A stretch of DNA of 64,000 nt from Botryllus schlosseri (Eukaryota): positions 16,616,001 to 16,680,000 of the forward strand of contig CM119379.1 of NCBI GenBank assembly GCA_051294905.1, read 5' to 3'. The translations under genes and the position numbers were made by a program. How positions within the stretch are numbered: position 1 is the first letter of the stretch; every line of letters begins with the position of its first letter. The notes below the pieces were generated by a model. It was not told the DNA's origin. It saw only the letters and a program-made list of their open reading frames with translations, and made no database searches. Below are positions 5,502 through 45,000 of this stretch, piece after piece.

Positions 5502-6458
5502 GTCGTGTGTGATCAGTGGCATACGCAGGTGATGGGGTTGGGGTTGGGGTTCGGAATCAAAAACTCGTGTTTTTAAAATGCATCATCAGAACAGCTTTTC
5601 TGGTCACATAAAGCGGGATTCTACTCACAATCAAAATTGTGCGAGTTATAGACAAACATGACGCAATAATGTGGCATAGTAAGAGTCGGACCGCCCCGAC
5701 ATTATAAATTACAGAGTGGGATTAAAAGTACTTTTATTGGTGGAGCCCCTTTTAGGGTTCTAATCGCATGACAAACAAGGCCCTTTTTAAACGGGGGAAA
5801 TGTTTTTGGAAAGCCGATCCTGTAAATATTTACCGTTTAGTTTCCGAAGAATGGGCGTAAGCTGCGGCACCATAGGAAATGAGCGGGAACAATCGAATGC
5901 GTTTGACACATTTCGAATAACTTTCTATAGCCGAGGACAGAGATTGATTACGATAAAATCAAGTCATTCGACCATATATACACGCTATAGTTAGTCGCAC
6001 GCACGTTTTTGAGAGGCGAGCGCAAAGTACAATGCCAACAGTCTCCAAATGAAGGGAGAAATAGGTACAGAAAGGAATTTACGACATGTTTGAAACAGTG
6101 TGCAGAATCGAGAGTTTTCTCTGTGGTATATTTTCCGTGTGGCGATATTATTGCTAAATCTTCTCAATGATATGATTATACACGTGACAGTATGAGTATG
6201 GTTAATATTGCATGCTCTATTATTGCTTGCGGTCAGTGCCTAATTGCTTACGTACTCTTTAACAAGCAATCATGATCCCTCTGCCGACGGCCACATGTTG
6301 ATCAACGCGGGAGGCCTTTTGTCCTTATGCCCGACTACAAATTTATTACGTTACTTCTACTTGAGTGCAAACGATGAACACTTTCACCACCTCTGCCGTT
6401 AAGCTATAGGAAATATAGATCAATATTCTCAGTCTAGCAGTCCCAGATGTGTTATCAG

Positions 6459-7300
6459 TAGGGCAAGTTTTTGCAACTTTTTTACAGCTTCCGACAGCTT
6501 CGTAGATACTCAGAATCTATGTACTATGGCATTTTAAGCTGTTTGGAGGGATTTAATAGTGCAACTTTTCGCTATTTTCCTAGCCAATTTTTGCTGCAAC
6601 TATTATCAAATATTGCGTTAAAACGTGAAAGAGTGATTTAAAAACATACTATAAACTATTTCTGTATGGTTCTACTTTCTCGATTTGCACAACAAAGATC
6701 TATATGATGGGTTAGCTGCATCTCACTGTTATCTATGACACAATGGAGAGAAGTTCAACTCCCCGTGCCAAACACGACGGGGCCCGAATAATATGTAATA
6801 GATCGCTTTATTAATTCTGTCGTTTAAATTTGAAATAGTTCACGAACGCCCAAGCGAGACCGCCGAAAATTACATAATTTTCACTGGGTCCCCTTCTTCA
6901 GGCTATTGATTTTGTTAAAGTCGCCAAGAGTGAGTTGTTTTCTGTAATGCCTTGGGTCAAGTTTGCGGACCTACGGGGTTTGGTGTGTGTTATTCTACTT
7001 GTTTTAGGGGGAGGGGGTTATCGCTATGCTGTTTGGAATTTTGTGGGGAATTATTCCCGCATTGCGTAATTTTCTTGCTGTGTGCCGGGGAAAATGTAAT
7101 TTTGGGAGGTTTCGTCAGAACGTTAAATGGCGAAGTAACAAATTTGACAGCTCTGCAGGAACTAGGTTATACAGCGGAGCCTTTCGAGTGTCTCATACCC
7201 TAATAATTCAACAAAATTATAAATGCAACTTTTTACTGCAACTTTTGTTAAAATTAAATGCAACTTTCTCGTGATTTTAGTGCAACAAAAACTTGCCCCA
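6459..7300. mobile_element. hAT-type MITE family 2, copy 1
   Basis: TIR TAGGGCAAGTTTTTG / CAAAAACTTGCCCCA; TSD GTTATCAG at 6451-6458 and 7301-7308. Confidence 0.88.
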
Positions 7301-8913
7301 GTTATCAGCTCATCACTATCATCCATGCGAAACCGACGCCATTTTGTACAAACAATACTCGTTCCTTCTGGAAGTTCTCGCCGCTAGCTGATGCTGTCGC
7401 AGTTGAAACGGATCACAACAATCTCGGCTCTCGGGTGAACAATGCGTGAAAAGCTCAGATGACACTCGAAATGATTTGATAATCCTCAACACAAAGCGTC
7501 ACTTGTAGATAACGGTAGCGAGGCTGTTTAGATATTGTAACCAAACTTTCTAATTAAGCACAGGAATGGTAAAATACGTAGTTGGGTTTGTAGAGCTGGT
7601 AGGGAAATAAAGTGTGATCTTCACGAATGCGACTCAGCGCACAGTGCGAATTCACGACAATGCGCGGCAGTTTCAACGGACATATTTATAGTTCGCAAAG
7701 AGTTGCATATTTAGCTGGCATATCAGTAATATCTTTCTGGTGTTTATCCGATAGTTCTTTTGGTCTATCAAGTTACAAGGGAATGACTGTCATCTTTCCG
7801 AGTCCACCGCCGATTTACTATTGATCGGCGTAGTGAATATTTCCTGACTTTGTTTGAATATAATTAGGGATTGCTCAAAATGAGAGGATTAAGCAGCTTA
7901 GCTGCATCACCGCTAAGAATTACTACTAGCTATTGTTTCGTTTGCAACTCGAAAATTAAGTGATTCACGTTGTTGCCGGAACCATAATTTGGCAACACAA
8001 TTATTTACTGATTGTCATCCCGCGGTCTGGTTACTGGTACGGATGGAACGATAACTGCGTAGTTTCTTCCAAGTGTTTTTCTACTCAGGAGATCATATCG
8101 CGTAAATAATCCACAATTCCCGCAGGCTAATTCTGTGCCGCGAGCGGATAGGCCGTTCACAGATCAACTTATCCAGTTCAGACGCGGCAGGCTCAGCTCT
8201 CGATTTGTTTTGAATTTATCGATCTCACGAATCGTTTGTATCCATGCTCTCGATTCAGCCTCGGTTAGATACTGCTTTCGATGCATTGATTTAATTTAAT
8301 CAGATCTGTTGGTAAAATATCCTAATAGAAGTTTTGGCTTATGGAGGACGTTCCTGTAGGGACGCACTATAGGTAGTTTAGCTAAGTGCATAAATCTCAG
8401 GATATCCAATAAGTCAATAATGAGTCGACACAATTCGGAAAATACTGGTTCCTATCCGACCGTCAAACATAAGAAGATCTTCGTAGAAGTCAGGTCCGGT
8501 TTAGAGGATGGGTGGAGTCAGGCAATATACTAGCTAATGCGGCTTGTTTTGCACAAATGGTTCAGGAGACATCAATCGCGGAGAACGGTAGTCAATTCAT
8601 AGGCCACGCAGGGACGTTTGTTGCAAGTGCGGCATAGCCCGATAAGCTTATTATCTAAATCCAAGCGTACTAATTATGTCCCACTATTTTGCAATATGTA
8701 TCAAGCTACAGCAGGAGACAGAACCAGGGTGGAGTTTTCGTACGTTTACAATCTCAAGACTTTTGCCTTCAGAACTTACACTGAAGCGTACCTACGTATA
8801 TTCGTTACATTGTAAACGTGTTTAGTGCGACTTCTGGCCTATACTTCTGTTGCTACCTGGAAGTATCATGAGAACGCGACACTTGTAGCTGAAATCATTT
8901 TATATGGGATATA

Positions 8914-24000: not shown

Positions 24001-27000
24001 TGTTACAGTTTTTTGCTTGTTTGATGGTCCATCTTCGGATACAAATTACTATGTATTTTAGCTGTACCCGGTCTAATTGTATCGACTGTATACTTTCGCG
24101 TGTAACATCGTGACTATAACCACCTGGTGTTTGCGCTAAACTGCCTGCATCGCCTGTCGGCATTGTGCTGCGAACATGCCGGCAAGAATTGCTTGTTTAC
24201 GCGGATTCTTCATCTCAAATTAGTCGCCGCCGCAACGTTCAAAAGGTCGCGAGTGCCGTAATAGCTAACCCCGCAATGGGCAATATGTAGGAGATATCGT
24301 GCCGGAATCCTTGTGCCGTGTTTTGATTTCGATCCCAAACGAACAAGCCGCTGTATATTTAATCCCAGCCGTGACATTTTCACTGAAACGCAAATCGGTT
24401 TACGGTCATCAACGGTCATGTTTATGACATTTGGTGCGACAACGTTTCAGGCACGCCTCCGAAGTCAACGCGGACGACGGTCTACGTTCTGCTTTATTAC
24501 GAAATAGTGCAGGCGAAATCTGCGTCGCCAAAAGTGCATCTGTCCGAGACAGCCGGCGACAGTGTGCGCGTGACTACCATATCCGGCGGTTTGGAGAAGG
24601 TGAATATCAATACTGTGCTATTAGATAGCACAGGTGGTCAACAAAGATTGCTTATACTTTACCGGAGTACCTTACTTGCACTATTTACTCATGCAGTTGT
24701 GTTTTAGACTACTTTCCGTTTTTTAGCCAGAACTAGGCTTTGAATACTTCCGGATTCAAACTTTTTTCTGATACGGCCTGAGTTTGATTGGAGCCGAATT
24801 CCATTTGGAAAAATAAGGTCTAAGTCAGACTAGGGAATTTGTTGATCTGTCCCGCTCTAGTACACGCATGCAGAGCCAATTACAATAATTGGAAATATAT
24901 CTTCATAGTCATTGGTATATGTGACTCATATTCACCGATTGGAATAGGCGTGAAGGCAACATTTGGCCTGATTTGCGCCTTACGCTAATGTGGAAATCTA
25001 GTAAATACAGCTATTTTCAACCCATGTATTTACAGTGCGATACTAATTTCAGATTAGCCGAATAGGAAAATCGGCGATAAAACAGAGTTGACAATTGATT
25101 GATAGAATTTGACTGGCCTAATTATTTACACGTTTTCTAAGCAGTAAAGTTTTACGCGTCGCGTGACCTCCGACGACATTTCTCTTCGCATTTATCGCGT
25201 CACTTGACCGATCGCCTTTTCCGTCTGTTCAGAGTGGCAGCGCTCGTTTTTACCTGGGCGATGTAACCGGCGGCCCGCCCGACTACCGAGACGCCAACAC
25301 TCTGTTCTCGGTCGGCGCCAAGACCGGCGCCGTCGTGACCAAGTCGGCTCTGGATAATTTGCACGGGACTTACAGACTTGAAGTGTTCACGGTGGAGGAA
25401 GTCTCGCAAGGCAGACGGGCGCGGATATCAAGTCAAACTGTGAGTAGAGCACGACTTTTACGTTGTTGCGCGCTCTTCATATGTGTGAAATTGTGATACT
25501 TATGAATTGTGTGATATAGCCCCAATAACTGTTGAATATATTTTGGAAGATTGTATCTATTTGTAGTGTCATTTGTCGTTTTGCGTTCGTCGCGAAAACG
25601 TATCTAATGATTTCGAAAGTACATATAGCCACCAATCGATTAACTTCCAATAGTGGTCCGTGGACATATAAGCAATGAGCATGCAACACTATAGCATGCG
25701 ACATTATAGCATGCGACAATTGGGCAATGGGCATGCCACGCATGAGCATGTGGGCTAAATTTCGGGTTAGGGTGGGTTACGGATGGATTTATGGTTGGGT
25801 TAGCGTTAGGGTTAGGATTGGGGTTAGGATATATATAAGGGTTACTTTCAGGGCTATGTTTTGGGTTAGGGTAAGGTTTTGGGTTATAAAGTCACATGCC
25901 GAAGTGACGCATGCTGAAGTGTCCCATGCTGAACTGTCGTTTTCCGTTGTGTCGCATGCTCATATGTCGGGCAATCCCTAAAAGTATGCAAACCTCGACC
26001 AAATATAGGTCTTGAAACCAGTTACTTGAGTACTTTTCAGGTCTTTTATTTTCTGCTTCTACTTGCCGTAATTTTGACGCGTATTGGAAATAGCAACTTC
26101 TATACTTGTAATTGAGTAGAAATTTATGACGTCACGTCTACTTCTACTTGAGTAGCACTGCTGTGTACTTTGATCGCCTCTGCCTTTGACGCATTTGGTA
26201 AACATTTCGTTACGATAAAACACGAGTTAGTCTGTGCATGACCTGACCATTCTCCACCGCGTATCTATGTTGTCGACGAGGGCGTGAGTGTTTGTTTGTG
26301 AGATTCATGGTGTTTGTCGACTACCATGGTCATTTACACCAGGCCAATTTTCTTCATTTCTATTCTGTAGCTGCCGGAATTGTAGCACGGCCCAGTTCCG
26401 GGCTTTCTATAAGACACCGCTAACACGGGTGATATGGCGAGGAGGAGCCTAGATAAACTTCCAACACTTGGGTAGGAATTCTGGAGTCGAACCCGCAACC
26501 CATTGGTGTTGTAGCTGGGGATTATACCACTACGCCATCTCGCCACAAACGCACGAGTGTCGCGCACCAAACGCGAATAAGGATTAAAGAACTTTGTATG
26601 TAAACAGCGGGACGTGTCAGCTCATAATTTGATAGCGATCCACCAACTTGAAACGGGTTATACGGTGCTGGTTGACAAAAGTCACGAGCTAAATTTATCG
26701 AGTTTAAATCTGTATTTTAGTAAATCCCAACCGGGAGCAATACTTTGAACATAGTCATCCGCTAAGACTGTCAAGATGTTAGCAATATTTCAAACTTTTA
26801 ATGATACCGTAAAAGCTTTATCTGTTCAGGCCTGCATGGCTCTTTTATCCGATTTATAAACTATTTGAAATGTACCATGACTTAGCAGTTAGCACGGTTG
26901 ATATTGCGTGCGGCGCATGTCCATTCCTTCGGATTCCGTGGGAATCTAGATTATTAGATACACTTAGCGGAGTCTAATTAGCGAACCGCAAACATACGCT

Positions 27001-30000
27001 ACGCAAGGTAATTGGGAGATTACTGTGTCTGGCATTTACATTGGCGATTCGCCGCTTTTGCTTGTTTCTTGTTGACAATGGTTTATCGACTGTTGTAAAA
27101 CACGGGTATAGCCACGTTATCACGCACATCATGATTTTTGCAATCTATTTTAGAGCGGATGAAATTCCCTGGATTCAGCTTATTTGGATGCGATGGAATA
27201 CCATTTTCTCCTTGAACTTCTAATGTATAATTAATTGCTGTTTCATAAATAAAATCTCGCAAATACATACGTAACTGGGCACATCTTCAAAACAATAAAA
27301 ACTTCTTATCAATTAATCACATCATGACTTGTGTAATCGCAGGCAATAATCAGTCCGTGTTGTAACTAATTTTGATGCCTTTACATTGTGTATGCGATAG
27401 GGCATACGCCCTATATTCCCACGTTATTTATTCTATTGTCCAACCACACAATGCTTCGCCACGCACAATGTCGGTGATTTGAAATGGACGTCTAAAAGCT
27501 TCATCCACCCTTATTTGATATAACGCCTAGTGAGCTATTGATATTTCCACACTGTACATTTTCCAAGGTTTTATGCTCAACGTCATCGTACCTAGTGTGT
27601 TTTTTCGCAATTATCGCGGGAATGTTTCAGTGTTTTTAGTTACGTTAAGACTAGAATAGAAACGGACTATAGCCCCATGTAATTATGTCCTGTAATTTCA
27701 CGCCAGCGAACGGCTGCTTTACTATTCGCCCAACGGAGACATACTTTACAGAGCCTTTATGGGCGCGGCGACATATTGAATTGTTTCAAACCCATTCAGA
27801 TTTATCGCCAAGTGAATTGTTGCCCGGGGTATCTGGTTTCTAACGATCGTAGGCGGATAGTTATTAACTGAAATAACTGAGACCCGTGTTTGTATAGGAC
27901 TATAAACATATCGAAGAGTTCATGTAAAAGGTTTCTTATGTTACATTCGCCTTAATCGCATTGACGAGATTAGTAAAATTTTCATCGCCACGCTTCAACA
28001 CTTCCGTCTATTTAAAAATCGATATAATTTGGTTTTATCCTGCGATTTACATTTGAACCTTCGCGCAAACGTGCCCTTTGTAGCATCAGCTCAGATTTCG
28101 GCACTTGGTAACTTTGGAAAGCGTATCGTCACAACTCTCTGTTTCTTATTCGAGAATACTTAGCCGTTTGGTATCGCTTCCATTTCCAGGATGAAATCAT
28201 ACGCGTCAGTTACGTCATGTGTAATTTATATAGCACTTGTTTGCGATGTCCGCAACCGACGCGATGATAATGCGGCGAGGTATTGTCGATAAAGGCGCCG
28301 CCGTGTGATTGTAAGCCCGCGATTAATCGGGGGCCCGTTATTCTCAAGCATTTGCCCGTGACTTGGTGGGGATATGGCGGACGTGCCGTTCACGCCAAGC
28401 GCGAGAATTCGACCGGGATTGTTTCACGGCCGTTAAACGTAGAACGCATTCCTGAATCATGCCCTGAAAAAACAAACGCGCTACTTATGCGTCGCGAATC
28501 GGAAGCCATTATTAGAAATTGTTGTATTATTTTTCTCTCGTGAGCGCTCGTTATGTTCTTATCTCGAGCGGGCAGTGACAGCTTGGCATTTTCTGGCAAC
28601 GCGGGTCTGGAGTTCTCGGTAATTAGCGACACGTTGGCGAAAATTCTAGGAGGTAGTTTTGATTTGCGCTGAGACGCAAGTACGACTGCGAGCAACACCT
28701 AACGGCTATGTTGAATCATATTTGCGACACATACTAAGGCCAGTGGGCTACTAGGCAATTATATAGGCAGTAGTTGGCAAATTGGCTAAAGCTACCTACC
28801 TACCTCGCCTATGGTAGGGACCTGGGCATGCCGTAATGCAACATGGGATTACATCATTAGTTCATTACTGCTGCAATATATTCGTAAATTGCACCGTCCG
28901 GTGCTGATATAGATACATGTGTGTAGTGTGTGTCAGGCCACCCTGAGAGTCCTGCCCAACCTCACCTCAACTAAGCGTGACGAGCTTGGTCTGTGGATAC
29001 ATTCCAATTAGCTGTGTCACAATCGGCATTTATCGCGTAACAGAAGGGATGCGCGTGTCGTCAGATCGAATATGAACTTTAAAATCCGATTTGGGATTTC
29101 ATAACCCGACCATAAACAGCTTATAACTTGTAACCTACCGATAAGTAAACGAGATGATATATTTATCATCGTGTGCGTAAGTCAACTACTGGAGTTAGCG
29201 GTAGAAATGAACTTTTAACGCCTGGCCTTCACTAATCTAGCCCGCGATGTTGAGATTGGCCTCGGCGGGAAACACTTATAAAGCAAGAATCACTTGATGA
29301 AAAGGCTATTACCATAATTGCTCGATTGCTACTATTTTGGAAGCGAGCCCGTTACCGTTTCGGCTTTGTTGTCTCGGCTGGGTTTTCTCATTGCGCGCGT
29401 TTTACCTCGTGACTTTGCTTGATTACGGTGATCGTAATTAATTATCGCTTCGGTCTGAGCAAATGTGGAACATTCTGAAGAAAATTGACATTCTTCACCT
29501 CAAGTGTCATGCGCTTTAATGGTCTTTATTTTTGGATTGGCGGCATCGGTGCAGTCGCCGTGTTTGAATTTATGAGAGGTCTCGAGGTCATCTCGTGAGT
29601 ACCGGTAGCCGTCTCAAATTTTGACGCTACTTCGCTTGCGCTGCATTAATGAGTGTAGTGGGCAGTGGGCACACTCCGAAAAGTAGAAGTACTTCGTTTC
29701 TGACCACCTCCGTGTATAATGAATTGTATATGCATGCTTGCATGCGTCACCACCAAGTTTTCGTGAGTATTCGAGCGGATGATAGTTCACGCAAGTTAGT
29801 TAACACGGAAGTGTAAAGTACCTGCAATGTGTTGGTACTCAAACCATCTGATTCGATGCTCAAAAGACGTGCATCGATCGGAAATATCTGATTCTGATTT
29901 TAATCGGTGCTGGTCCGTACTGCCCATCCTTTTTTGCAATAGAGGCATTGGTTGTGTCGTCACTAGGGCTGGGCAAAATGATTCGAGTACTCGAATCTGA

Positions 30001-33000
30001 ATCGAGTAGTAATTTTAATGATTCGAGTCGAGTAGTAAAAGACGATTTTTTCGAGTACTGAAATTTTACGGTCCTCTCAACTGAAAGTTAATTTACTGAC
30101 GAGAATTATAGTTTTGATACTATTTTCCACTGAGGAAGCCGTGAAACCTTGATTGGCCGTGTTTGAGCACACCAGGCACAGTTTAAAGCTACGAACGTTA
30201 CTGGAAATATCACATTTCCGAAGTCATTATCATCCAGCAAAATTGTTAAGAAGTGCAATGAAATCGGTATGGTCGAAAAAATACCAAAGTATCTTTAATG
30301 TGATGGATAACAGGCATTACGTTCTCTGTGGTGGCATAGAAGGTTCATATTTGGACTTCGACATAGTACATCCTGTTGCGACGTCATAATGAGTGATACT
30401 CGATTTCTCGACTCGACTCGAAGCATATTACGTGATTCAGAATCGAATCACTCTGGTACTCGATTTTGCCCAGCCCTAGTCGTCACATGACGTGTACAGG
30501 CTTTTTCTATTCTCGCCTTCTACGCTTTGACACCGAGACAGACTCAGTATTTTGGGGGAAATTCCGCTTCGATCTGACCTTGTGAACCGCAGTAAGTGAT
30601 TTTGCAACACCGGTCGAACGGTATACAGCATGCACGATTTTGACCGAAGTTGCAAGCACATTCGAAAGTTATTTTCGATATACGAGATGGCTGAGTGTAG
30701 GCCCAAACGCCGAAACAAGCCTTCGTGTTAATCGCTGCGTTATCCCGGACGCTATCTCGAATGAAAACGACTCTCACGGCCGAAGGAAAATAAACAGCGC
30801 CTAACCTAACGAGGTGATTACTCGGAGAATATGGCATCGAGAAACATTTGTTCTGTTGTTTTGCTGGCGCTGACTGCGGTCACTTTCGCCTCGCTTGTAA
30901 AATCAGATCTCTAATAAGCTTTCGGATTTTCTATTCTGTATCGTGCGCGAATATGGAATATGTTTGTTATGGCAACGCGCGCTGCAGCGGGATGTCTAGT
31001 TGCGCCGAAAGTAGCAATCGATAATACGCACGATTTTAGCTTTAAACAAATAAAAGTGGAATCTTCGCGAATATATACCGGGATATGTTATCCCCGGTAA
31101 TCATGTTTGGGATTGCAATAAATAGAAGGTCTATTTTCGCAATTTACTTGATTTGAACGCGAACGCTTGATTGCTCGTTATTTGCATTTGGGTTGCGGCT
31201 CGTCAATGGAAAAGCGGTGAACTTTAAGCGCGCCTTTCAAGCGCATTTGTATAACCGTGAGATAAGATTTTGGCAACGATAAAGTGTGCGCGGATAAGCA
31301 GCGCTTGGCACTGTATTAAATCTCTTTTCGCGATATAAATGTCATAACTCACGATATAGAACGTTTTAAACGTAATCTCCGCGTTACATTGTCGATTAAT
31401 GTAAACAAGTCAAGTCGTTTTGATGCTGATGCATTTCGTTACGATCCGACTCGTGTGTATTCCGCTACCGAAATAAATGTCGGACAAAATATTCTTGCCA
31501 TCTTCAATGGGCGACTTGGTACTTTCGCCAACCAGTTCCGTACTGTACTGGGAAATAAGCGAGTGTGTACCGGTACTGTCTCGCAACGTAAAAATGCTAC
31601 ATGCGTGCGTGTGCGGGAAAAAGTTTGAGAAATTTAACTGTAGCAATGTCGTGTATCTACGTTTTCATTTGCAATCCATTTTGAGAGCAAAGTTTATATA
31701 AACACACACACACACGCAGTCGTGCCGCGGCCTCGTGGCTTTTGGTATGAATTCTCTCCCCCGGATTCGAGATGTTATCGCTGTAGATTTTGTTTTCCGC
31801 CCCTCTGCCATTACGGGATAGTTATCTCACAATTCCGGAGTACGGAACACGAGCGTCCGCGTCACGAGCGACAGCGGGGCGAAGCTAATGGTTTCCCGCG
31901 GTTTGCAAATAGTGTAATGCGATCCATAAATACATGTAGTTTTGTTATAACCCTGGTATCGCGACCATGCACTGTTGATAACTGACTGGTACCTGATTTA
32001 AACGACTGTTTTTTGGTAGATTTTGAGATTACTATTCTTTTTTCTGTCTGTGCTTAAACGCGGGACAATGCCGTCTCAGCATTTCACTTAATGGCGACTC
32101 CGCGACATGTGACGTGAGATCACATTGAACCGTATGAACTATGAAGGTATATTCGTGGATGGTGAATGTTAAATTATTTCGTAAAAGACACGAAATAGAA
32201 TTGGTGTAAATACACAGTTACGCATCCACCTTATATCCACCTTCCACTGGCGCATAGGATAGCCAATATGGACAAAATGTTCTTTTTACATATTCTTAAA
32301 TTGTCGACGTAGGCTTTGTGACGCCATATATGGTCACTACGTCACAATGAATACATGGCGTCACACGATTACTAAAAACTTTGCTCCTCCAAATTTTCAT
32401 TCTGGCTTGGCCTAGGCGCCTGCCACAATCTGGCTATTGTCACTCACGACTGGTTGATGTTTGTTACAGGCCTTGAAATTGGGATTTACAAGCAGGTAAA
32501 ATCCAAATGAACAGGTGGATTGGAGCGGACTATAGAATGCCTGTCGTATTTTATCATTTAATAAGAAATAAAAGTGACGAACCGTTCTGGAATTTCTCCA
32601 ATCTCGCTCGGTGTTAAAGCGAAGCAGCAGATAACTTCCGAAGCGCCCTGCGATTATGTAAATTATACCAAACAAAATTGCATATAGATAGTGACAGTAG
32701 TCTCCACTTTCCGGTGGCAAGGGCGTACAATTTCAAAGCAATCCGCGGCGCATTTCTAAACTAGCAACTTCCATCCTTGCCGCGCGCGTTTAGATATTTC
32801 AGCGATAAGCTCACGGTACCAGTCGGCCCTCATGAGATCAATATCGATCACTCAAATTTTCTCGTGATTCGATCGTGACACATACAGCATCACCTTGCGG
32901 GCTAAATTCACGCCTGAAGTAGGATCGCCTACATTTCGTTTGTGGCTTCAGAAATGGATTCTTTTATCGCCTTTATAGTGGCTATACTGACCTGCACATG

Positions 33001-36000
33001 ACAAAGCGCTATATACGCAATCCTAGTGGGTAGCCTAAGGATATACCCGGCATTTGCGTTTCGATTGAATTGGTCTCATCATGCAATTGTCACGCCATTT
33101 CGTTATTCAACAATATGTTTTCCTCGCTCGGTCAAGACTTATCCGCTGACTTTGGCAAATGAGGAAATAACGGGTCGCACCTAACCATGCGTCCCTTTTA
33201 CGTTGTATGATCTCGTGAACGAAATGTTGGTGAAATCAAGCCGCGCCAGCGTGCAATTTGTTTTGATTCGAAACATATTTGTTGGAACCGTGTACGGATA
33301 ATGCTCACAGCCTTTCCATAAAACTAATAAACCGTGTTACTAATCACATAGTCGACACATAGACACATAAGTCGCTGTGTACAAATATTGCACTGTCGCG
33401 AAAGGAATTCTGGTAGCAGCTCAATCCGAATCATCCGTACTCTGGTGTTATCGAAATTGGAGCGAAAAGATTGTTAAGTTTCGCTAAGACATCAACAATT
33501 CTCGTGGATGAATACAAAAAATACAGCACACCTTAACCAGACGGTTTCGCAGTATTAAGATACGTCAAAAGCGATATTGCTAAGTTTTTCTTGCTCTGGG
33601 ATCGGAAATTCTCTATACTTTACCTGGATTGTCAGTGACCCAGTTTAAAATATGTTCGTGTCAAACATGCCTTTCAGACGACAGTTCGAAACTAGATAAT
33701 CAAATCGAAATTCATCTTCGGTCGCACAGAATACGAGCATCCGAGTCTGATCACCTTGATTTGATTATACTGATCCTTGTCTTATACTGTGGCAATGCCG
33801 AATACTATGGATTATTGTCATTTATCGCTTTGAATGTTCTACTTCTCCATTTTCTTATCTTCGAGCTACTATATACCTATATATATTTATATATGCGTCC
33901 TATATCGCCCTTTTTAGAGCAATTTGATTGTAAGTTTAGGACCAAAGACTTTACTTTGATCTGACGCCCCCTGAGCCAGGCGATCGAACAGGTCTTGTCA
34001 ATATTTTTGTACAATATTCATGAAACATAACCAGTGACGTGCGGTCTAGACCAGGGGTGGGCAATTATTTTCCTCCGCGGGCCAAATGAGAAGTGGAAAA
34101 TACGTTGGCGGGCCGAGTGAAAACTTTTAGCTATATTCTCCGGCGTATTTTGATATATTTCTAAATTACATTGTTGATAAATGCTGCTCAGTGAATGTGT
34201 TGATGTTAGGTAATGAGAAAGCGGCGGTAAATTTTAAAAAATATCTATTTGCAGTCATGATTTGAAACAATGTTGAACATGATACATTGCTAACTCACTA
34301 AACAACTTTCCACGTTATTCTTTTAAGGCACTAGAACAGTGGTTCTCAAACTTTTTTAGAAACGTTCCCTTTGTGATATTGAAAAATTTCGCGTCCAACG
34401 CCCCCCCCCCCCTAGCATGATATCAAAAAAACATATTAAAAAGAGCAACCAGCATGCTAGCAATCCCGACGGATAGTTTAATGGCCTGGAAGGTTATGGT
34501 TGTTTATGAGAGAATTCTGTAATATCAAAGTCGGACAATACACAGAGCAATAAACTATAAGCTGGGGTTAAATCGCGCTGGGCGCGCAAAATGTTTTCAT
34601 TCAACTTCAGCTTCGCGCCTCTTTTCAGATGCATTCACGCCCCCCAGTTCGAGAACCACTGCACGGAAATGTATATGGGATAGTACAAAGCAATTGTCTT
34701 GGTTGCTGTATTCCGAGCAGTGTGTAGCTCATATAGCCTTGATGTTGAGCGAAGTTTGCAGATTTTCTGAATTTCACCCTCCCTTGACCGAGTGTTTCGT
34801 GTTTTTGGCATAATTAAAATTCTTAACAAATAAATAAATAAATAAAAATAGCAACCAATCTCGGCACCATGCTCGGCAAAAACTAAAAGGACGGGTTTAC
34901 CCCTAAACTCCAGTATACAAATATTTAGTGCCCTTAACCTTCTTTGAATTTCAGCTTTCGGCTTTCTCTTTTTGACATGCCTGTTCAATGTTCATAATTT
35001 ATGGGTGATAGATATGATGAGTCATATAGTAATCGCGAGCACTACTCATCAACATTCAAAAAGCAGGTTTAATGTTATGAATTCCAAGCAACCTTACGCG
35101 GGCCGCACAGAATGGCTTCGCGGGCCGCATTTGGCCCGCGGGCCGCACTTTGCCCAGGCCTGGTCTAGACGGATAATAATTACTATCTCTTCAAGTACCG
35201 GTATAAATTATTCGAAGCATAAAGCAACGACAATGCAGCCTATGCAAGTAGCTATCACATACCATAATTTAACGGAAAATCAATACCAGCTACATAAGTA
35301 AGGGAATGTATTTGCTCCGAGTTACGTATTGGCCGTCGCTACTATATAATTCCTACAAGACAGTCAAGAGTCAAGACTGTTGTATTTCGAAATCGATAGC
35401 GCGTTTCACCGTGCAGCGATTGTCCAATTGTTAGCGAATAGTGCATGAGGCAAATTCGTTTGTGCCTCACCTGGCCATTGTTTCTCTGCGATGTCATTGT
35501 TTGTAATAAAGCCGAATGTCACCTTCCTTGGCGATTTTGAGGGGGTTCTGGTGGTCTGACACTGTTAATATTTGGATTTTCGGAATCATTGTGACGATAG
35601 CATTTGATTGATACCAGTTGTTATGAATTTCGAGCTATTTATGATGAATTGCATTGTCGCAGGTCTCCTTTCGCGCTGTATTTTTGAATAATAATTATGA
35701 AAATTGATGATGTTGTGTGACAAAATGTTGTTCAAATTTAGTTATTTATGAACGTCGATGTAAAATATCAATAATCATCGACTCATGGAGGGTTTTCACA
35801 ATTTTCACTTATTCGCCCTGACGTCAGGTGAGGCACTGCCTCACCTGCCTCATTGGACCGCACGTCACCTAACATAACGGTCCGCTAACTTGGCTACGAA
35901 GTCTACTATGCCAGCATACCAGTCGTGATATTTCCGCGCAGCTGTTCACTGCAGAGATCAAACAATTATTGTCGCGAGTCTTTGTAGCGTTAATATGAAT

Positions 36001-39000
36001 TTAATTGTCGGCGTCAATGGAGTAATGTTTGTCACCTGCACTCTGGCAAATAGGCGTACATTGTACTCAAGGTGACACAAGGAGCTGCTTTCGCTTCTCC
36101 CGGTACTTGAGTGGCACTCGACCGAGTGTAAGCTATCCCCGCCCATTTACCATGTATATTGGATATGCGCGAGAAATATATGCGTTGAGGACTGATGATA
36201 GCTTTCGATCTAAAGTTTGGAATCTAACAGTGAGGGATAGTTGTATATCCCATCTGGGAATAGAAATTGTATAACAACAGGTATGCTTTCTCACTTTCGC
36301 TTTACTGAACCAAATTTTAGACAGATCATTGCTTTACGTTACAAGCCACCCCTGCGCGCATTTCCAAGCCCCTTATTGCACCTGAATCGCTAGTCACGCG
36401 AAAGACGAACCGGCAAAACTTTTAAGAATTTCCAACGAAATGGATACGGTATAAACATCGTATACACGCGGAGCTGTCACCGTATAATAACAAGCCTCTA
36501 GGCCAGCCATTATGCACTTTCCACCATATTTTTAAATATGATGTAACTGTAAACGGACGTTAAATTTCCAGTATACTGTAATCCATTTTGATATCAGAAT
36601 CAAATCGGTGATTGCGCGCTCCCGTTTTGATAGATCGGAAGATAGGCTATTAAGAAGCGGTGAGATATATAAATTTAATAACAGCGCAGCGGTCTCTAGC
36701 ATAGTGTTTTTCAACGTGAATGGCACTCGCTGGTAGAACGCCTTGCATAATAAATGGTCAAAATATTGCTATGGATCTATTCTCTCATATTATCTCTCTT
36801 GAAATTCAAGATTTATGTGATCATACATCATGCCGTATTATTATAAAAGTAATGCTGATTAATAACGAGGAACGTAGCTGGCAATACAGGGCTATTCGAT
36901 GAACGAGCGAGCGTATATTCCATGCAGTTGGAAAAAGTAACGAGATTTAGCCTGTGTATTGTGGAGTTTTGATGGGTTATACCACTTTCGACTGTATTTA
37001 ATTTGGATTATTAGCACGTTATTGTGCTTTCTAGAAAAGAGTTTGTGTGAATTGTGGGAATTTTAGCTTCCGACGCCGTTTAAACGTGATCACGCGAATA
37101 ATGCTCCCTCTTAATACGGATGAGCGTTAAAACTTGTCAATCGCCGTTTCCAAACGTGACGACCATCGAACGCGTACTTTTCGCGCAAAATTCGTATATT
37201 AAGCACAACCGAAACGCTAACGCCCCCCCCCCCCACGTCGGACCACTCTGCATAATTTTTAATCAAATCACAATATATCCGCACCTGCACCACTATTTAT
37301 ATTCGCGTTGACACCGAATAACTATCCGAGTCCGATTGAAAGGGAGATGAATATATATATAGTATATATATATACAGACAGAGAAAGATACTTTATTTGG
37401 TATTTACATTTACAGCATCAACATAGAATATAGAAGAAAGCGCAATTAAACCCGAAACACCGACATACCATGCGCTAATTCGCACTGATCTAGAGATGAG
37501 AACGAACGTGAACGTATATCAATATACAACATGCACATTTGCACAATGTACAGCGATTATCTGGACAGCGAAATAATCACAGATGAACGACATGCACAGC
37601 TTATCAAAAGCGCAGTTCCCTCTAGACGGGCTTCGGAAACCCCGGAAACAAGTATAGCTTTTTGCCGTTAAACGAATCGCTGCTTTCCACGGTCGCCGTG
37701 CACTCGTGATACTTCGGCATCTTCGTGGGCATGTTCGACAGTTTCTCGCCCACCTCCCGACTGACGTGCTCCATGATCTCCACCACGTGACAGTCTTTCG
37801 CGCGCTTCTTGAACTGATTCGCGATGGCGGTGATGAACCAGCCGCGAAATGAAATGTGGTCTGGCTGGCACGCGAAAGCCAGCATTAGGTCTGCCCCCAT
37901 GCCTGTGTATTCGAACGCGGTCGCGTCGCTTTCAACGCTGTCCGACTCGATCGTGCTTCTTCTGGGTGTGTTGTAGTTGTAACGCGGCGGAGCTCTGTGT
38001 GTTTTTTTCGCAGGTTTTATGATACTATTGAGTAAGCTTCTCAGCCACGCGCTGTCCGATTGTGGTTCTATAAAGCCAACCGCGTCTGACTCCACCGCGC
38101 CCCTTCCCGGTGATTTAACAGACGTGTACTTCTTGGCCTGTTTGCCTCTGCACATCTGGAAAAATAGCATTTTAGGCTTCCCATTCAACACCGGACACCG
38201 CGTCACTTCCGACACAATCTCCGTGACGTTGGTTTTCGTATTCATATCATCGCCCAGTATAAAGTCGTCCTTCTCTCCGTGCGACATCACTATGATCGCG
38301 CATACGGCAGCACGCTTCATTGCCGGCGAGTTTACGAAATCCGCCACAGTTTGCTTCATGGCTTCTGCGGTCAAGTCACCTACAAACTCAACGGCGAAGC
38401 CTAACGACTGCCAGAGTACGACCATTTTCTTCGCGTCTTCCTGACTGCCGTTACGCTTTAGTTTCTGGTCCTTAAATTCGTTGTTCATGATCAAGATACG
38501 GCCTTTTGGATGTCCCCTAATCGGGTACACGTCGTTCGCGTTATTTTTGCTCACGTAATCCTCGTAGTCGCAATCCTCGACTTGTGCGTCGATCTCGTCT
38601 TCAACACTTGCTGATTTCCCGAGCTTGACAGGCATCTCGTTCAACTCTTTCGAATGCGTCGTTCGAGTATCTTCCGCGGGCAGCGTGATGTTGAAATGGA
38701 CGGGCCCGTAAAATATCGGATTCCCGCTAAAAGTGGACGCCATCGCCTCCGCGCGAGGACTTTGGTTTTCACTCATTTTCGATCAGTATCTTTTACCGTT
38801 ACTTTGAATAATTTAATGCAATCTAGAGAGGTTCTTATGATTGGTAAGCTTTGTCGGTAATTGCTGGAAAAGCACTACTGACCTTCCAGTTTTTACGCGA
38901 CTGCCTTCTCGGATTGAAGCCGCATGTGACTTGATAGAATCTAAACGGGGCGCGGGGCTTTAAAGCCCATATACTTCCTTAAAAAGCCTGACGTATTCAT

Positions 39001-42000
39001 CGTCATAAGTCAAGCCCGACAAGGAAATTCTCGCTCTCGTTTTCTTAAGTTTACACACGCCTGTCAATTCTGTAACAGTCACTGAAAATCCGTCGTTGAG
39101 ATATGTTAATGCAGCACTGCGATATGTTTACCATTAATACATGACGTTTCGTGAAGTCACATCCGCAACGCTGGCATGGCAGTGTCTACTATTCAATGCT
39201 CGCAAGCCGTGATCAATCCTTCGCGTGACTACTGCTGGACTTTGTCTTTTCTCAAATTCAACATGGAGTCAACTGAACTGTACAATCGAAATTCATCTTC
39301 TGTGATACAGAATACGAGTACCGTATGTCCGTATCCGGGTCTGGTCACTACGGCAAGTTTTTGTTGCAGTCAAACCCGTGAAAAGTTGCACTTACTTTTA
39401 CCAAAGTTGCAGTAAAAAGTTGCATTTATTTTTCACAAAGATTGCACTAGAAAGTTGCATTTAAGGACAAGTTCCTTGAAATTATTAGGGTATGGGATAC
39501 TCGAATCGATCCGTATTCAAGGCACTGTAGCAAACTCGGTGTTGGCGACTTCAACAAAATCAATAGCCTGAAAAAACTGACCCATCGGAAATATAATTTT
39601 CGGCAGTCCGGCCTGAATTGACGTCAAATCAGAAAGGACCTCAAATTTAAACGACAGCGAAATAAGCAAGCGATCTATTTACATATAGGGCCAAATATTT
39701 CCAGTAAAAAGTAGGTTGCATGAAAAATGGAAAAAAGAAATGCAAAAAGTTGCATGAAAAAATGGAGAAAAGTTGCGATATAAGATTCCTCTAGACAGCT
39801 TAAAACACCATACATAACTTCTGAGTAATTAGGAAGCTGCCGGAAGCTGTAAAAAAAAGTTGGAAAAGTTGCAAAAACTTGCCCTACTGATCACCTTGAT
39901 TTGATTATGTCGATCCTTGTGTTGATTTTGAAAACTGCGGCAATGCCGAATACTATGGATTATTGTCATTAATCGCTTTGAATGTCCTATTTCTTCATTT
40001 TCTTTTCTTGGAGCTGCTATATACTTATATATATAGGCGTACTATTACCATATTTTTAAATATGATATAACTGCAAACGTATGTTCGATTTCCAGTATAA
40101 TCCGTTGTGTTAAACTGAATCAAATCGGTGATTGCGTGCTCGCGTTTTGATAGATCGGAAGATAGGCTATTAAGAAGCGGTGAGATATATAAATCTAATA
40201 ACAGCGCGTCGGTCTCTAGCATAGTGTTTTTCAACGTTCGTTGCGCGCGCTGGTAGAACGACTTGCATTACGTATATTAATCACCATCGAAACGCTAACT
40301 CCCCCCACGTCGATGGACTGGGCAGTAGACACGGGACCAAGCACGACTACAGGGCATACCTCGAAAATTTTACCTCGTGACTTTCCCATTATTAAAATTT
40401 TCGTGACTAATTGTGTTGCGTTCATTTTAGCGTGTGCAAACTGCGAATAAGGTTTTGCTTCTGAGGCAGGGTGCAGCTCATATCCGGACGTGACGCCGCA
40501 CCGGGTGGGATTGTCTTTGATTATATTTCGGACTTGCCCACTTGCGACGCCGCACCACCCTGCATAATTTTTTAATCACGTCACAATATATCCGCGCCTG
40601 CACCACTAATTTTATTCGCGTTGAGACCGTATATATATATCTCAATCCCATCAAAAGGGAGTTGAAGACAGAGAAATATACTTTATTTGGTATTTACATT
40701 TACAGCGTTGACATAGAATAAAACAAAGCGCAATTAAACCTGAAACACCAACAGACCAAGCGCTAATTCGCTTATATCTGGAGATGAGAGTAAAAGTATG
40801 CTATCAAGTACAACATGCACAATATACAGCGAAATAATCATAGGTGGACGACATGTATTGTATAGCTTATCACCAGCGCAGTTCCCACTACACGGGCTTC
40901 GGAAACCCTGGGAACAAGTACAGCTTCTTGCCGCTAAACGAATCGCTACTCTCCACGGTCGCCGTGCACTCGTGATACTGCGGCTTCTTCGTGGCCATGT
41001 TCGACAGTTGCTCGCCCACCTCCCGACGAACGTGCTCCATGATCTCCAACACGTCACAGTCTTTCGCGCGCTTCTTGAACTGATTCGCGATGGCGCTGAT
41101 GAACCAGCTGCCTTCCTTGTTTCGGAAAGAAACGTGGTCCGGCTGGCACGCGAAAGCCACCATTAGGTCTGCCTCCATGTCTGTGTATTCGAACGCACTT
41201 GCGTCGCTTTCAACGCTGTCCGACTCGATCGTGCTTCTTCTGGGTGTGTTGTAACGCGGCGGGGCACCGTGTTCTTTTTTCGTAGGTTTTATGATGCTTT
41301 TGAGTAAGCTTCTCAGCCACTCGCTGTCCGATTTGGGTTCTGTAAAGCCAATCGCGTCTGACTCAACCGCGCCCCTTCCCGGTGATTTAACAGGCGTGTA
41401 CTTCTGTGCCTTTTTGCCTCTGCACATCTGGAAAAATATCATTTTAGGTTTCCCCACCAACACCTCAGACTGCTTCACTGCCGACACGATCTCGCTGACG
41501 TTGGTTTTCGTTTTCATATCATCGCCCAGTATAAAGTCGTCCTTCTCTCCGTGTGACATCACTATGATCGCGCATACGTCAGCACGCTTCATTGCGGGCG
41601 AGTTTACGAAATCCACCACAGTTTGCTTCATACCTTTTGCGGTCAGGTCGCCTACAAACTCGACGGCGAAGCCTAGCGACTGCCAGAGTACGACCATTTT
41701 CTTCGCGTCTTCCTGACTGCCGTTACGCTTTTGTCTGTGGTCCTTAAATTCGTTGTTCATGATCAAGATACGGCCTTTTGGATGTCCCCTAATCGGGTAC
41801 ACGCCTTTCGCGTTTTTTTTGCTCACGTAATCCTCGTAGGCGCAATCCTCGACTTGTGCGTCGATCTCGTCTTCAACACTTGCTGACTTCTCGAGCTTGA
41901 CAGGCATCTCGTCCAACTCTTTCGAATGCGTCGTTCGCGTATCTTCCGCAGGCAGCGTGATGTTGAAATGGACGGGCCCGTAAAATATCGGATTCCCGCT

Positions 42001-45000
42001 AAAAGTGGACGCCATCGCCTCCGCACGAAGACTTTGGTTGTCACACATTTTCGATCAGTATCTTTTACTGCTACTTTGGATAATTTAATGCAATCTAGAA
42101 AAGTTCTTATGACTGGTTAGCTTTTTTGGTAGTTGCTGGAAAAGCTCTCCTGGCCTCCCTTCTTAGATTCGAACCGCTGACGAGTGACGGCCCGTCACTG
42201 ACGGGGCGCGGGGTTAAAGGCTGTTTACTTCCGCAAAAAGCCTGACGCATTGACAATAAGTCAAGCACAAGGAAATTCCTGCGCTCGTTTTTCTTGAGTT
42301 TGCACACGCCTGTCAAGTGTCAACTCTGTAACATTTACTGAAATATGTCGCATGTCGCTGTTAATATGGTAATGATTAATGTTACATGACGTTTCGCGAA
42401 GTCACATCCGGAACGCTGACATGGCAGTTTCTGTTGTAGCATGCAAGCTGTGTTCAATACTTAGCGTGACTACTGCTGAACTTTGTCTTGTCTCAAATTC
42501 AACATGCAGTCAGCTGTATTATGATAGCTCGTACGCTTGACGGTTGCTATACCGATATTCCACACTTCATCGATTTCCCGTCGACCGCTCGCCACCGGTC
42601 CTGATATTCTGACAACTGAATTCAATTCAACTTATTGTAAACAATTTCATCATTTTAATATACCACAAGACTGCGATACAATGGAAGAAAGGAAGGTGTC
42701 AATAGAAATAAATGACGCTCTGACATCGATGATGCGTTGTAACGCGCCAAGTGGAAAATTTGCTCTCAACAACGTGTCGTTATTTTGCTAGTGAGGTTGC
42801 GGGTGAATGAATGTCGTCATCTCGCGACCGAAAGTCATTTGTACCGACTACCGAGTCACAAACTATGATGAAGTGACTACTCTGCATCGAATGTGCATTA
42901 TAAGCTCGGATCAGGCCAATACCATGAGTACCAATTCCTATGTTTATTCCATCACAAATGGCAGCATTTTGGTCCGATACAAATTGATATCTTATCGAGG
43001 TGACTGGAGTCGCGAGACTACTGTGTATCATTATGCATTCAAGTATAAAATATAATCAAATATAGTCAAATGTATGTAAATTCGGTTTCGTCTTCGTATT
43101 TTAGATAACAGTTGAGGTCAGCGACGAAAACAACAACCCACCCGAGTTTCCGGAAGGCTTGGCCCGTGCCAGCGTGTCCGAATCGAAACCGCCCGGTACC
43201 AAAGTGACCACGGTCAAGGCGACCGACCTGGACTCCGGCGATGTCTTGACTTATTCACTGAGCTCCAAATCAGGAGACTTGGGATCGGACTTCGTCATCG
43301 ACCCTGTCGAAGCTGTCGTATCCGTCGGACCCTCTGGAGTTGACCGAGAGAGAAAATCTCAATATCTACTTGAAGGTAGGAGATATTTTCAAACATACTA
43401 GATAAAACGATTGTATCTTCTCCCTCAAGAGAATTTTCGAATTGATTTATAGTAGGTTAATTACTATCATTTCAGTGGTTCTTGACCTTACCAACCCTTT
43501 CGATACTCCGACGAACCCAAATATTTGTACAGTCACAAAAGCAAACGCAGTACAAATCAAATACGTTACTATAGAATATTGGTGCACTCTGCACAAGGTG
43601 TACTGTGCGTCAAAAGCATCGTTAAAGAACAAAACCACTGAGACATCATACAACCAAATGATTATAATGAATATTTACCAGTTAAAACCACTGTATTCCA
43701 TTAAATAAATACCCTCTTTTCCTAATACCAACATGACAATGGTTATATTCTGATAAATATCACAGAAAATGTTTGATATTTATCAATATCAGTTATTATT
43801 ATTACCTTGAATTGTGGTGTAAGCCCACCCCAGTACTTGAGTTATGTTGGGAAATGGTGGCCAGTGTTAAGTGCAGCGAGTTGTGACGTCACATTGCGCA
43901 TTTGTGGTAGATTCAATGTCCAAATGCCAGGTTTGAATTACTATCACAGGATTAATATAAATGAGACTTCTTATCGTTTTAAGTCACTGCCGATGACGGG
44001 ACGCACCGGTCCACCATGGAATTGCAGATAGACATCGAAGACGTTAACGACGAGGCGCCGCAATTTACGTCCACCCCTATCTGCTTTGATTTGTCGGAAA
44101 ACTCTCCGTACGGCACCGTCGTGGGGCACTTAGAGACAGAAGACCGGGACCAGGATTCCTATGTTGAATATTCGATCATTGGCGATAATGGTAGGTTTCA
44201 TGCACCACTTTATCTTAAGCCTTTACCACATCTACTCTACATTGGCAATAACCTATCAACTTCGAATTCTGATATCAGTTTGGCTCCACAAAAATCACTG
44301 AATGGGTACTTTTAATAATATAATTATTCTGTATCTGTATCTCGAAAATCCGATAGCTGTTTTTGAACGATTTATCATTACGTCTTGATATTCTAAATGA
44401 ATATCTGGATACATTGTGCCATATTGCTGCTTGCGTATCACATATCGCACTTTCTGTTTGTGATTTGAGTCATGCTATTGTTTAGCGCTTGTGGCTAAAT
44501 TTAACGCCTTGACTCGTTTGATTAATCACAGACTGATACCGATTGTTTTGCTTCTTATGTATTGAAACGTGTCGCTTTTATGTTTCAGAAATGCACACGA
44601 ATTTTACAATCCACGCTAATCACGGAACCATACGGTATACCGGAACAGGTGGACTGGATAGGGAATTACAAGATTTGCACATTTTACAAGTTCGAGCAAT
44701 CGATCAAGGCGGTATGTGACAGAATTCCTACAACGCCTCACGGTATCTGTTGGATATTCATTTGAGCGTATTGTCTCTCAGTAGAAATCGAAGAGAATCT
44801 TCAATTTATGTACGTGAATTGTGTTGTCATGATTTGAGCTGGATGAAATAGTACGCTCTGTTTGTAGGACATTTACACCCTGATTGAAGTTATATTTTTG
44901 TGAATAGGTTTAACGGCATTTCCACGTTACATAAACCATCACTTCTCATGCTGAGTTCTAAAGGATTTTACCCCATGTCCTACCCCGTGTCACTTCAGTC

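Follow-up and report, generated by a model that had tools for sequence, protein, structure and literature searches.

A probably tandem-duplicated pair of caspase genes on the antisense strand of a putative Fat-type cadherin intron in Botryllus schlosseri

Caspase repertoires of Ciona have been described by Terajima et al. 2003 and Weill et al. 2005, as cited in PMC2779465, and the lineage considered here is, likewise, a tunicate one possessing caspase paralogues of its own. A spliced leader, GATTGGAGTATTTGGTTGTATTAAG, has been published for Botryllus, Halocynthia, Styela, and others (PMC3795323). Further points of comparison are the nested intronic genes of animals and, for the proteins themselves, CED-3 and the effector caspases-3/-7 (Peptidase C14A), with which the two proteins discussed below have in common the p20/p10 domain, the His of SHG, the Cys of QxCRG, and the residues of the pocket. 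The stretch of DNA analysed, referred to below as the window, comprises 64,000 nucleotides of Botryllus schlosseri contig CM119379.1. Its two caspase genes, A and B, are probably a tandem-duplicated, independently transcribed pair of short-prodomain caspases of a tunicate-specific “QMCRG” subfamily, situated antisense within a Fat-type cadherin intron where their ancestor was already resident before a species split. What is new here is the 3.27-kb duplication with its flanks, the limits of the RNA, the leader of B, the presence of at least 34 single-frame loci in the genome, and the old age of the nesting.

The host intron (25440-43104, plus strand) is 17,665 bp long, has GT-AG borders and phase 0, and separates two cadherin exons designated exon 10 and exon 11. 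Exon 10 (25233-25439, plus strand) ends with a complete codon followed by the GTGAGT donor (...CAAACT|gtgagt at 25439/25440), and exon 11 (43105-43375, plus strand) starts in frame after the acceptor tttag|ATAACAGTT at 43104/43105 and is followed by a GT donor at 43376-43377. Exon 10 gives a weak match to the Pfam Cadherin model (model positions 41-84), and exon 11 begins with the repeat-end linker ITVEVSDENNNPPEF, after which positions 3-69 of the model are matched by the next repeat; the two matches thus fit a single EC repeat rebuilt across the intron. The form of the splice sites, the phase, and the rebuilt cadherin repeat make it probable that exon 10 is spliced to exon 11, and the splice borders and Pfam scans agree with the length, phase, and rebuilt repeat given in the preliminary description of the locus. 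The intron was also called the largest one, which is correct only for the part of the host gene within the window.

The host gene encodes a long run of cadherin repeats (E 6e-87), then EGF (56.3-56.9 kb), LamG (57.4-58.1 kb), and EGF (58.4-58.8 kb) domains, and after them a hydrophobic segment at ~61.3 kb. Judged by sequence, a Fat-type cadherin is plausible, and the EGF-LamG-EGF order of the tail makes the original name Fat4 plausible as well, but PDB and atlas searches with the host returned only generic cadherin or “FAT4-like” labels, by which Fat4 is not separable from other cadherins. The EC linker motifs of the big host exon are too degenerate for the EC-repeat HMM. Scanning the window against Rfam and for tRNA genes gave nothing.

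Both the location of the caspase genes inside the host intron and their orientation on the opposite strand are established. The coding region of A (37622-38776, minus strand) specifies 384 aa plus stop, that of B (40888-42048, minus strand) 386 aa plus stop, and the proteins are 85% identical. Pfam Peptidase_C14 is matched by both (A, E 1.9e-34, 119.8 bits; B, E 1.1e-41, 143.5 bits; cut-off 21.4), SHG and QMCRG are intact in each, and the motifs with the catalytic His and Cys read VMSHGE and FFQMCRG in A and B, as they do in the homologues P0001 and P0002. The two complete antisense caspase ORFs first described in the Fat-type intron are therefore real in respect of strand, domain, and motifs, and, as set out below, both are transcribed. 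The nearest solved relatives are CED-3 and caspase-7/3, with R-N-G, QxCRG, and S-F-R-N..GSWF aligned. In the alignment of B to CED-3, the Arg of RxG, the Gln of QxCRG, the Arg of SxR, and the GSWF loop match; A keeps both pocket Arg residues and the Gln but carries a derived deletion of four residues in the SFR....GWF loop. The AlphaFold2 model of B, obtained with an input alignment of 4 sequences only, has a mean pLDDT of 38.7. A and B would be zymogens of Asp-specific cysteine proteases, with the catalytic His in SHG and the Cys in QMCRG, and their activation would occur by cleavage at (I/V)ESD sites, which are repeated in the linker of ~70 aa that connects the large subunit to the small one.

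The RNA evidence, in the form of reads and contigs, comes from four runs, each belonging to a different study, with runs X1-X3 only guessed to be RNA. RNA covers only 37392-38769, 40560-42118, and a repeat between the genes, the neighbouring intron being silent in raw RNA-seq, and no joints within the caspase genes were present in the four runs. Gene A is represented by specific contigs at least 99% identical to it (e.g., 37392-37761) and gene B by overlapping, joint-free contigs extending from 40140 to 42096, and both genes are thus transcribed.

The mRNA of B is joined to its leader at a trans-splice acceptor AG (42095-42096, minus strand; cttttctAG|ATTGC), and a contig of run X3 ends at 42096. 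Six raw RNA reads pass from the acceptor into GTATTTGGTTGTATTA, which equals the last 18 nt, at the 3′ end, of the leader published for ascidians; the junction is thus seen in six reads of a single run plus one contig end, and for B alone. A distant cis exon was considered as the source of these non-genomic 5′ letters and dropped, since the letters are those of the leader. Between the acceptor and the ATG, there is a 5′ UTR of 46 nt (42094-42049, minus strand). Gene A has a candidate acceptor at the conserved position (38823-38824, minus strand; ctctctAG|ATTGC), and leader-junction reads looked for in the RNA were not seen for it. Because the B mRNA is trans-spliced, A and B are better called genes with a single coding exon than strictly unspliced ones, and the earlier word “intronless” is appropriate for their uninterrupted coding regions but not for the B transcript. 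At the other end, AATAAA begins 225 nt after the stop codon of A (37392-37397, minus strand), where RNA coverage stops just past the signal, and 201 nt after that of B (40682-40687, minus strand), where raw-read coverage stops in the bin 40543-40739. These signals, already reported at about 200 bp downstream of each ORF, occupy aligned, conserved positions; taken alone, the hexamer shows no enrichment across the window, with 75 occurrences against the 84 expected.

A similar arrangement exists in a second species. In another sample, one 5351-bp contig carries a 450-aa caspase in a single ORF (P0002) and the orthologue of exon 11 (P0004), which lie on opposite strands, 2.0 kb apart, and in the same relative orientation as A/B and exon 11. 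P0004 is 66% identical to exon 11 over all 91 aa (translated 43105-43377) and begins at the same residue, and the caspase is 45-55% identical to A/B. In both species, the promoter side of the caspase faces exon 11 at a distance of 1-2 kb. The presence of an orthologue antisense upstream of the orthologous exon 11 indicates that the nesting is old, and the synteny of the host intron, initially proposed as a check, has thereby been found in another species.

In public protein data, the A/B orthologue group is, by sequence similarity, a narrow one. A word-based homologue search gave only 3 hits, and among the thousands of caspases returned by an exhaustive profile search, only the P0001 cluster is close, the next best score dropping from 784 to 238 bits. 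In the tree, A and B are joined with 100/99 support, their grouping with P0001 and P0002 is moderately supported (85/79), and the other paralogues from the same genome form a separate clade (96/99). P0001, P0005, and P0006 lie on short contigs on which neither neighbours nor the spliced leader were found, and these contigs are therefore uninformative on synteny. The genome contains at least 34 Peptidase_C14 loci with the whole domain in one open frame; single-ORF paralogues are 34-36% identical to B over the full length, and the few intron-split caspase loci are 22-33% identical to it over exon-sized pieces. Uninterrupted caspase genes are, thus, the rule in this genome, so that the lack of introns in A and B is no sign of retroposition. 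In the literature searched, nothing linking ascidian caspases to intron loss was found.

The tandem duplication of A and B is a duplication of 3.27 kb of DNA including both the promoter-side and 3′ flanks. Unit A (36520-39280, minus strand) comprises the gene together with ~500 nt on its 5′ side and ~1.1 kb on its 3′ side, and unit B (40040-42520, minus strand) is its counterpart; the ~470 nt preceding the ATGs are 85% identical between the two, which bears out the conserved upstream region of the preliminary description. Between the units lies a MITE-like repeat (39341-39894) with GGCAAGTTTTTG/CAAAAACTTGCC ends and CTAC flanks; its very high RNA depth comes from many genomic copies, and a second copy is found inverted at 6451-7308. 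As sea squirts are highly polymorphic and the DNA of the copies differs by only ~9%, A and B might be viewed as divergent haplotypes misassembled in tandem and not as two loci. Such a false duplication is very improbable, however, since three runs, each of a separate study, contain A-specific contigs alongside B-specific ones (each at least 99% identical), contigs lead from the sequence between the units into B (40140-41085), several large indels and the repeat inserted at their junction distinguish the units, and a dS of 0.15 is high for alleles. The two genes do not seem to have diverged evenly. Polarised changes number 13 in A, plus the deletion, and 7 in B, a ratio that is not statistically significant, and the branch lengths are 0.095 and 0.052, respectively; B is probably nearer to the ancestral sequence, with A evolving about twice as fast and having lost four residues of the substrate-binding loop. 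That A is becoming a pseudogene or a non-catalytic regulator, leaving B as the sole working protease, is a possibility to be kept in mind, although we consider it the less probable outcome: the derived 4-aa deletion beside the P1-binding Arg, a 2-aa insertion, the larger number of derived changes with the longer branch, and the lower depth of A in the raw RNA run all point that way, but the ORF of A is intact, its catalytic motifs and the Arg are retained, the gene is transcribed, and the pairwise dN/dS of 0.42 (bootstrap 0.26-0.71) is below 1.

It was also suggested earlier that A and B arose by retroposition, as processed copies of a caspase gene with introns that inserted into the Fat intron, their coding regions being uninterrupted despite the intron-dense host gene. 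This origin is unlikely. The existence of a few intron-split caspase loci does make conceivable an ancient retroposition, which may have taken place at the base of the single-ORF family, but these loci are the most distant from B, farther than the single-ORF paralogues, and a closely related intron-containing parent sought in the genome was not found. The homology of A and B extends into untranscribed flanks on both sides, and, in accordance with the first account, neither a poly(A) tract nor a target-site duplication is present at the two genes. A relic of the leader, looked for with up to 4 mismatches in 20, is also absent from the window and from 30 paralogue loci; this absence counts for little, as the LINEs headed by the leader may have leader genes as their targets instead of copying capped RNA, and an old event would have lost the relic. 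The view of the ~420 genomic leader copies as leader-RNA genes was dropped for the 12 copies examined, four of which are followed by ORFs of 254-476 aa, including two of the LINE-type ORF1. Taken together, the duplicated flanks, the single-frame family, and the old nesting, shared with another species, leave the retroposition of A and B unsupported; all caspases of the clade being intronless, a circumstance named in advance as arguing against it, is nearly the case, only a few loci being intron-split. Quite improbable, too, is a functional coupling of the nested genes to their host, in which the Fat cadherin and the caspases would be co-regulated, or else exclude each other through transcriptional interference, and which would keep the arrangement in place. 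The arrangement is indeed conserved though the other caspase is only 45-55% identical, and its promoter side is directed toward exon 11 in both species, but both caspases come with a conserved upstream region and a trans-splice acceptor of their own (in A, a candidate one). Besides, a gene nested in an intron does not easily leave it, so passive conservation is to be expected. It is very improbable that the caspase has been kept facing exon 11 specifically because its transcription is mechanistically coupled with that of Fat, a gene of growth control and polarity, by interference or shared regulatory DNA; if true, Fat signalling and cell death would be hard-wired to each other in sea squirts.

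The preferred history, that of a resident gene duplicated in place, would run as follows. A single ancestral caspase gene would have been resident in the host intron, facing exon 11, before the split from at least one other species, and a local 3.27-kb DNA duplication would have given rise to copies A and B. B, and probably A, would be transcribed from its own upstream region, with a short outron lost and the ascidian spliced leader added at the AG 46 nt before the ATG; the resulting mRNA of ~1.45 kb would be co-linear with the genome and end past the conserved AATAAA. The case is tidy and fairly ordinary, and it does not overturn current views. It provides a gene model for two tunicate caspases that look unannotated (for B, a trans-spliced 5′ end; for both, one uninterrupted coding exon followed by a poly(A) signal), and the nesting common to the second species is a small but usable microsynteny marker. 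The locus is also a natural case for asking about interference between a nested gene and its host, and the pair, with the loop deletion in A, offers a ready comparison for the function of the caspase substrate loop.

In comparison with CED-3 and caspases-3/-7, A and B differ in having QMCRG in place of QACRG, a 90-aa N-terminal region that lacks a CARD or DED but bears a short conserved FxGxPxFxxPVxFN motif, an unusually long inter-subunit linker with its repeated sites, and a coding region free of introns. Like other trans-spliced stolidobranch genes (PMC3795323), B has the same leader in its reads and a polypyrimidine-AG acceptor, but no operon is evident for A and B, which are 2.1 kb apart, each with a conserved upstream region of its own. 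They resemble the nested intronic genes of animals in being a complete gene pair on the strand opposite to the host, with their own promoter side and poly(A) signal, and differ from them in trans-splicing to the leader, with the junction seen for B, and in a position common to a second species.

The caspase genes A and B are best explained by a lineage-specific tandem duplication of a tunicate caspase gene that has long resided in an intron of a Fat cadherin gene; this picture is well supported, and it is an ordinary one. The host, a cadherin gene of many exons on the plus strand, encodes eight cadherin repeats significant in Pfam (E 6e-87) in a single exon of 1207 aa, followed by EGF exons (56.3-56.9 kb), Laminin-G pieces (57.4-58.1 kb), further EGF (58.4-58.8 kb), and, near 61.3 kb, a hydrophobic segment; we take this domain order to be of the Fat4/Drosophila-Fat type. 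GTGAGT directly follows exon 10 (25233-25439), TTTAG precedes exon 11 (43105-43375), and neither junction splits a codon. In exon 10 there is a weak match to positions 41-84 of the Pfam Cadherin model; exon 11 opens with the repeat-end linker ITVEVSDENNNPPEF and passes into the start of the next cadherin repeat. Because of these splice borders, codon junctions, and repeat matches, the 17,665-bp intron (25440-43104) and the exon 10-exon 11 join appear real, as far as sequence alone shows. The two complete caspase ORFs reported on the opposite strand are indeed present on the minus strand (A, 384 aa, 37622-38776; B, 386 aa, 40888-42048), with Peptidase_C14 matches far over threshold and the SHG histidine and QMCRG cysteine kept in both. 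In position and strand, the nested pair is confirmed.

Expression was followed in contigs from three small runs, each of a different study, and in the raw reads of a bulk RNA-seq run. They cover 37392-38769 and 40560-42118, as well as the repeat between the duplicated units; neighbouring intron bins are empty in the raw RNA-seq reads, and no joints inside A or B occur in the contigs or reads. A-specific contigs match A, and B-specific contigs match B, at 99% identity or more. At 42096, where one contig also ends exactly, six reads depart from the genome into 16 letters followed by sequencing adapter. Taken with the AG at 42096-42095 and in the mRNA sense, these letters give GTATTTGGTTGTATTAAG, the 3′-terminal part of a spliced leader (GATTGGAGTATTTGGTTGTATTAAG) described in Botryllus schlosseri, Halocynthia roretzi, Styela plicata, and other stolidobranch ascidians (PMC3795323). 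The window lacks the leader letters, but the genome holds about 420 copies of them. The genomic site in B, cttttctAG/ATTGC, is conserved in A and, judged by its letters, would make a good acceptor. The leader match at this site marks the genome as that of a tunicate and places the caspase transcript on the minus strand. It also means that the genes have one coding exon each, while the mRNA of B, and probably that of A, acquires the leader by trans-splicing 46 nt ahead of the first AUG; "intronless" therefore holds for the coding sequence. A contig of run X1 (41995-42324) crosses the acceptor into the upstream region; it is probably outron or pre-mRNA, which puts the start of transcription 230 nt or more ahead of the acceptor.

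Twelve of the ~420 leader copies were inspected (L031-L042; the leader occupies 1501-1518 in each), and in 12/12 the leader is followed by unrelated sequence. ORFs of 254-476 aa follow it in four, two of them LINE-type ORF1; in L035 and L042, the post-leader ORF is coiled-coil and has a Baculo_FP-like domain, as LINE ORF1 typically does.

The duplication units, delimited by direct repeats and pairwise alignment, span about 36520-39280 (A) and 40040-42520 (B). Their coding part is 86-96% similar, and the likeness extends ~470 nt upstream of the ATG, in keeping with the conserved upstream region noted earlier, and more than 1 kb past the stop. The AATAAA signals (minus strand, 37397-37392 in A and 40687-40682 in B) align; no A-run follows either, in agreement with the reported lack of a poly(A) scar, and the homology runs on past them. 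Shared flanks, homology beyond AATAAA, and the missing A-run show that the pair arose by duplication of DNA in tandem rather than by two retropositions. Divergence between the copies corresponds to a dS of 0.15 and a dN/dS of 0.42 (bootstrap 0.26-0.71). Between the units lies a MITE-like repeat (39341-39894; another copy, inverted, at 6451-7308) with 12-nt inverted ends GGCAAGTTTTTG/CAAAAACTTGCC, CTAC on its flanks, and numerous internal AAAGTTGCA motifs; its very high depth and many loose ends in RNA-type runs mark it as a multi-copy transcribed repeat. Within the same intron, 6 kb away, 33703-33886 is 85-89% identical to both sides of the inter-unit junction (39284-39318 and 39887-40034). 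It may have been left by an older rearrangement, and no caspase coding remnant adjoins it.

The preliminary description took the single-exon structure to suggest retroposition. A whole-genome scan with the Pfam Peptidase_C14 model gave ~70 matches, at least 34 of which hold essentially the whole domain in one stop-free open frame, and only three or four loci are apparently split by introns. The split loci share 22-33% identity with B over exon-sized pieces, versus 34-36% over full length (E 1e-58 to 1e-62) for single-ORF paralogues; being more distant, they provide no intron-bearing parent. With duplicated flanks, no A-run, and so many single-frame loci, retroposition of the pair is unsupported, and the caspases of this clade come close to being generally intronless. 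A single ancient retroposition may have occurred at the root of this family; no leader relic is found in the window or at any of the 30 caspase loci, which argues weakly against retroposition. At C4:14.32-14.40 Mb, five or more related QMCRG caspase copies lie together, and frameshifts or stops in some make these likely pseudogenes. Elsewhere, a repeat spanning 7.9 kb or more, whose copies on different chromosomes are 98% identical (L050:2035-9947 on C16, L051:2099-10000 on C13) and which occurs in at least 14 places in the scan, carries a 257-aa Peptidase_C14-like ORF (E 2.8e-13), preceded on the same strand by four ORFs without Pfam match and one ending in a chromodomain; it may be a young mobile element with a caspase-like gene.

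The nearest public proteins are P0001 (397 aa; 52% by BLASTP, 56% in alignment) and P0002 (450 aa; 45% and 55%), and a profile search finds the A/B orthologue group narrow in public data. P0002 comes from a 5351-bp contig of another sample, whose opposite strand encodes a 138-aa cadherin product, P0004. Exon 11 as query retrieves this same product, with 66% identity over all 91 residues and an alignment beginning at residue 1 in both. P0004 lies 2.0 kb from the ATG of P0002, and the two are oriented relative to each other as exon 11 and B are here. In the tree, A and B form a pair (100/99) that groups with P0001 and P0002 at 85/79; the other QMCRG paralogues of the same genome form a separate clade (96/99). 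The contig arrangement and the tree together indicate that the nesting preceded the divergence of the two species and that A and B were duplicated later. Since P0001 and P0002 both read FRGQ(D/E)GSWF, the SFR----GWF of A is a derived 12-nt deletion. Polarisable differences number 13 for A and 7 for B, and A has the longer branch; its ORF is still intact and transcribed.

The two proteins are 85% identical. No CARD or DED was found in their first 90 residues, and a linker of ~70 residues bears VESD and IESD/VESD motifs. The linker of P0002 (residues ~300-345) contains four to five tandem GPG(R/Q/K)IESD units, a putative Asp cleavage motif multiplied. Near the N-terminus, A, B, P0001, and P0002 share the short invariant motif F-x-G-x-P-x-F-x-x-P-V-x-F-N between variable flanks (residues ~14-32 of B and A; 41953-42009 and 38681-38737, minus strand). 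A structure model was of too poor quality for use. Of the solved structures, CED-3 is the closest relative, followed by caspase-7 and caspase-3, and the pocket residues of B (R-N-G, QxCRG, and SFRN..GSWF) align to all three.
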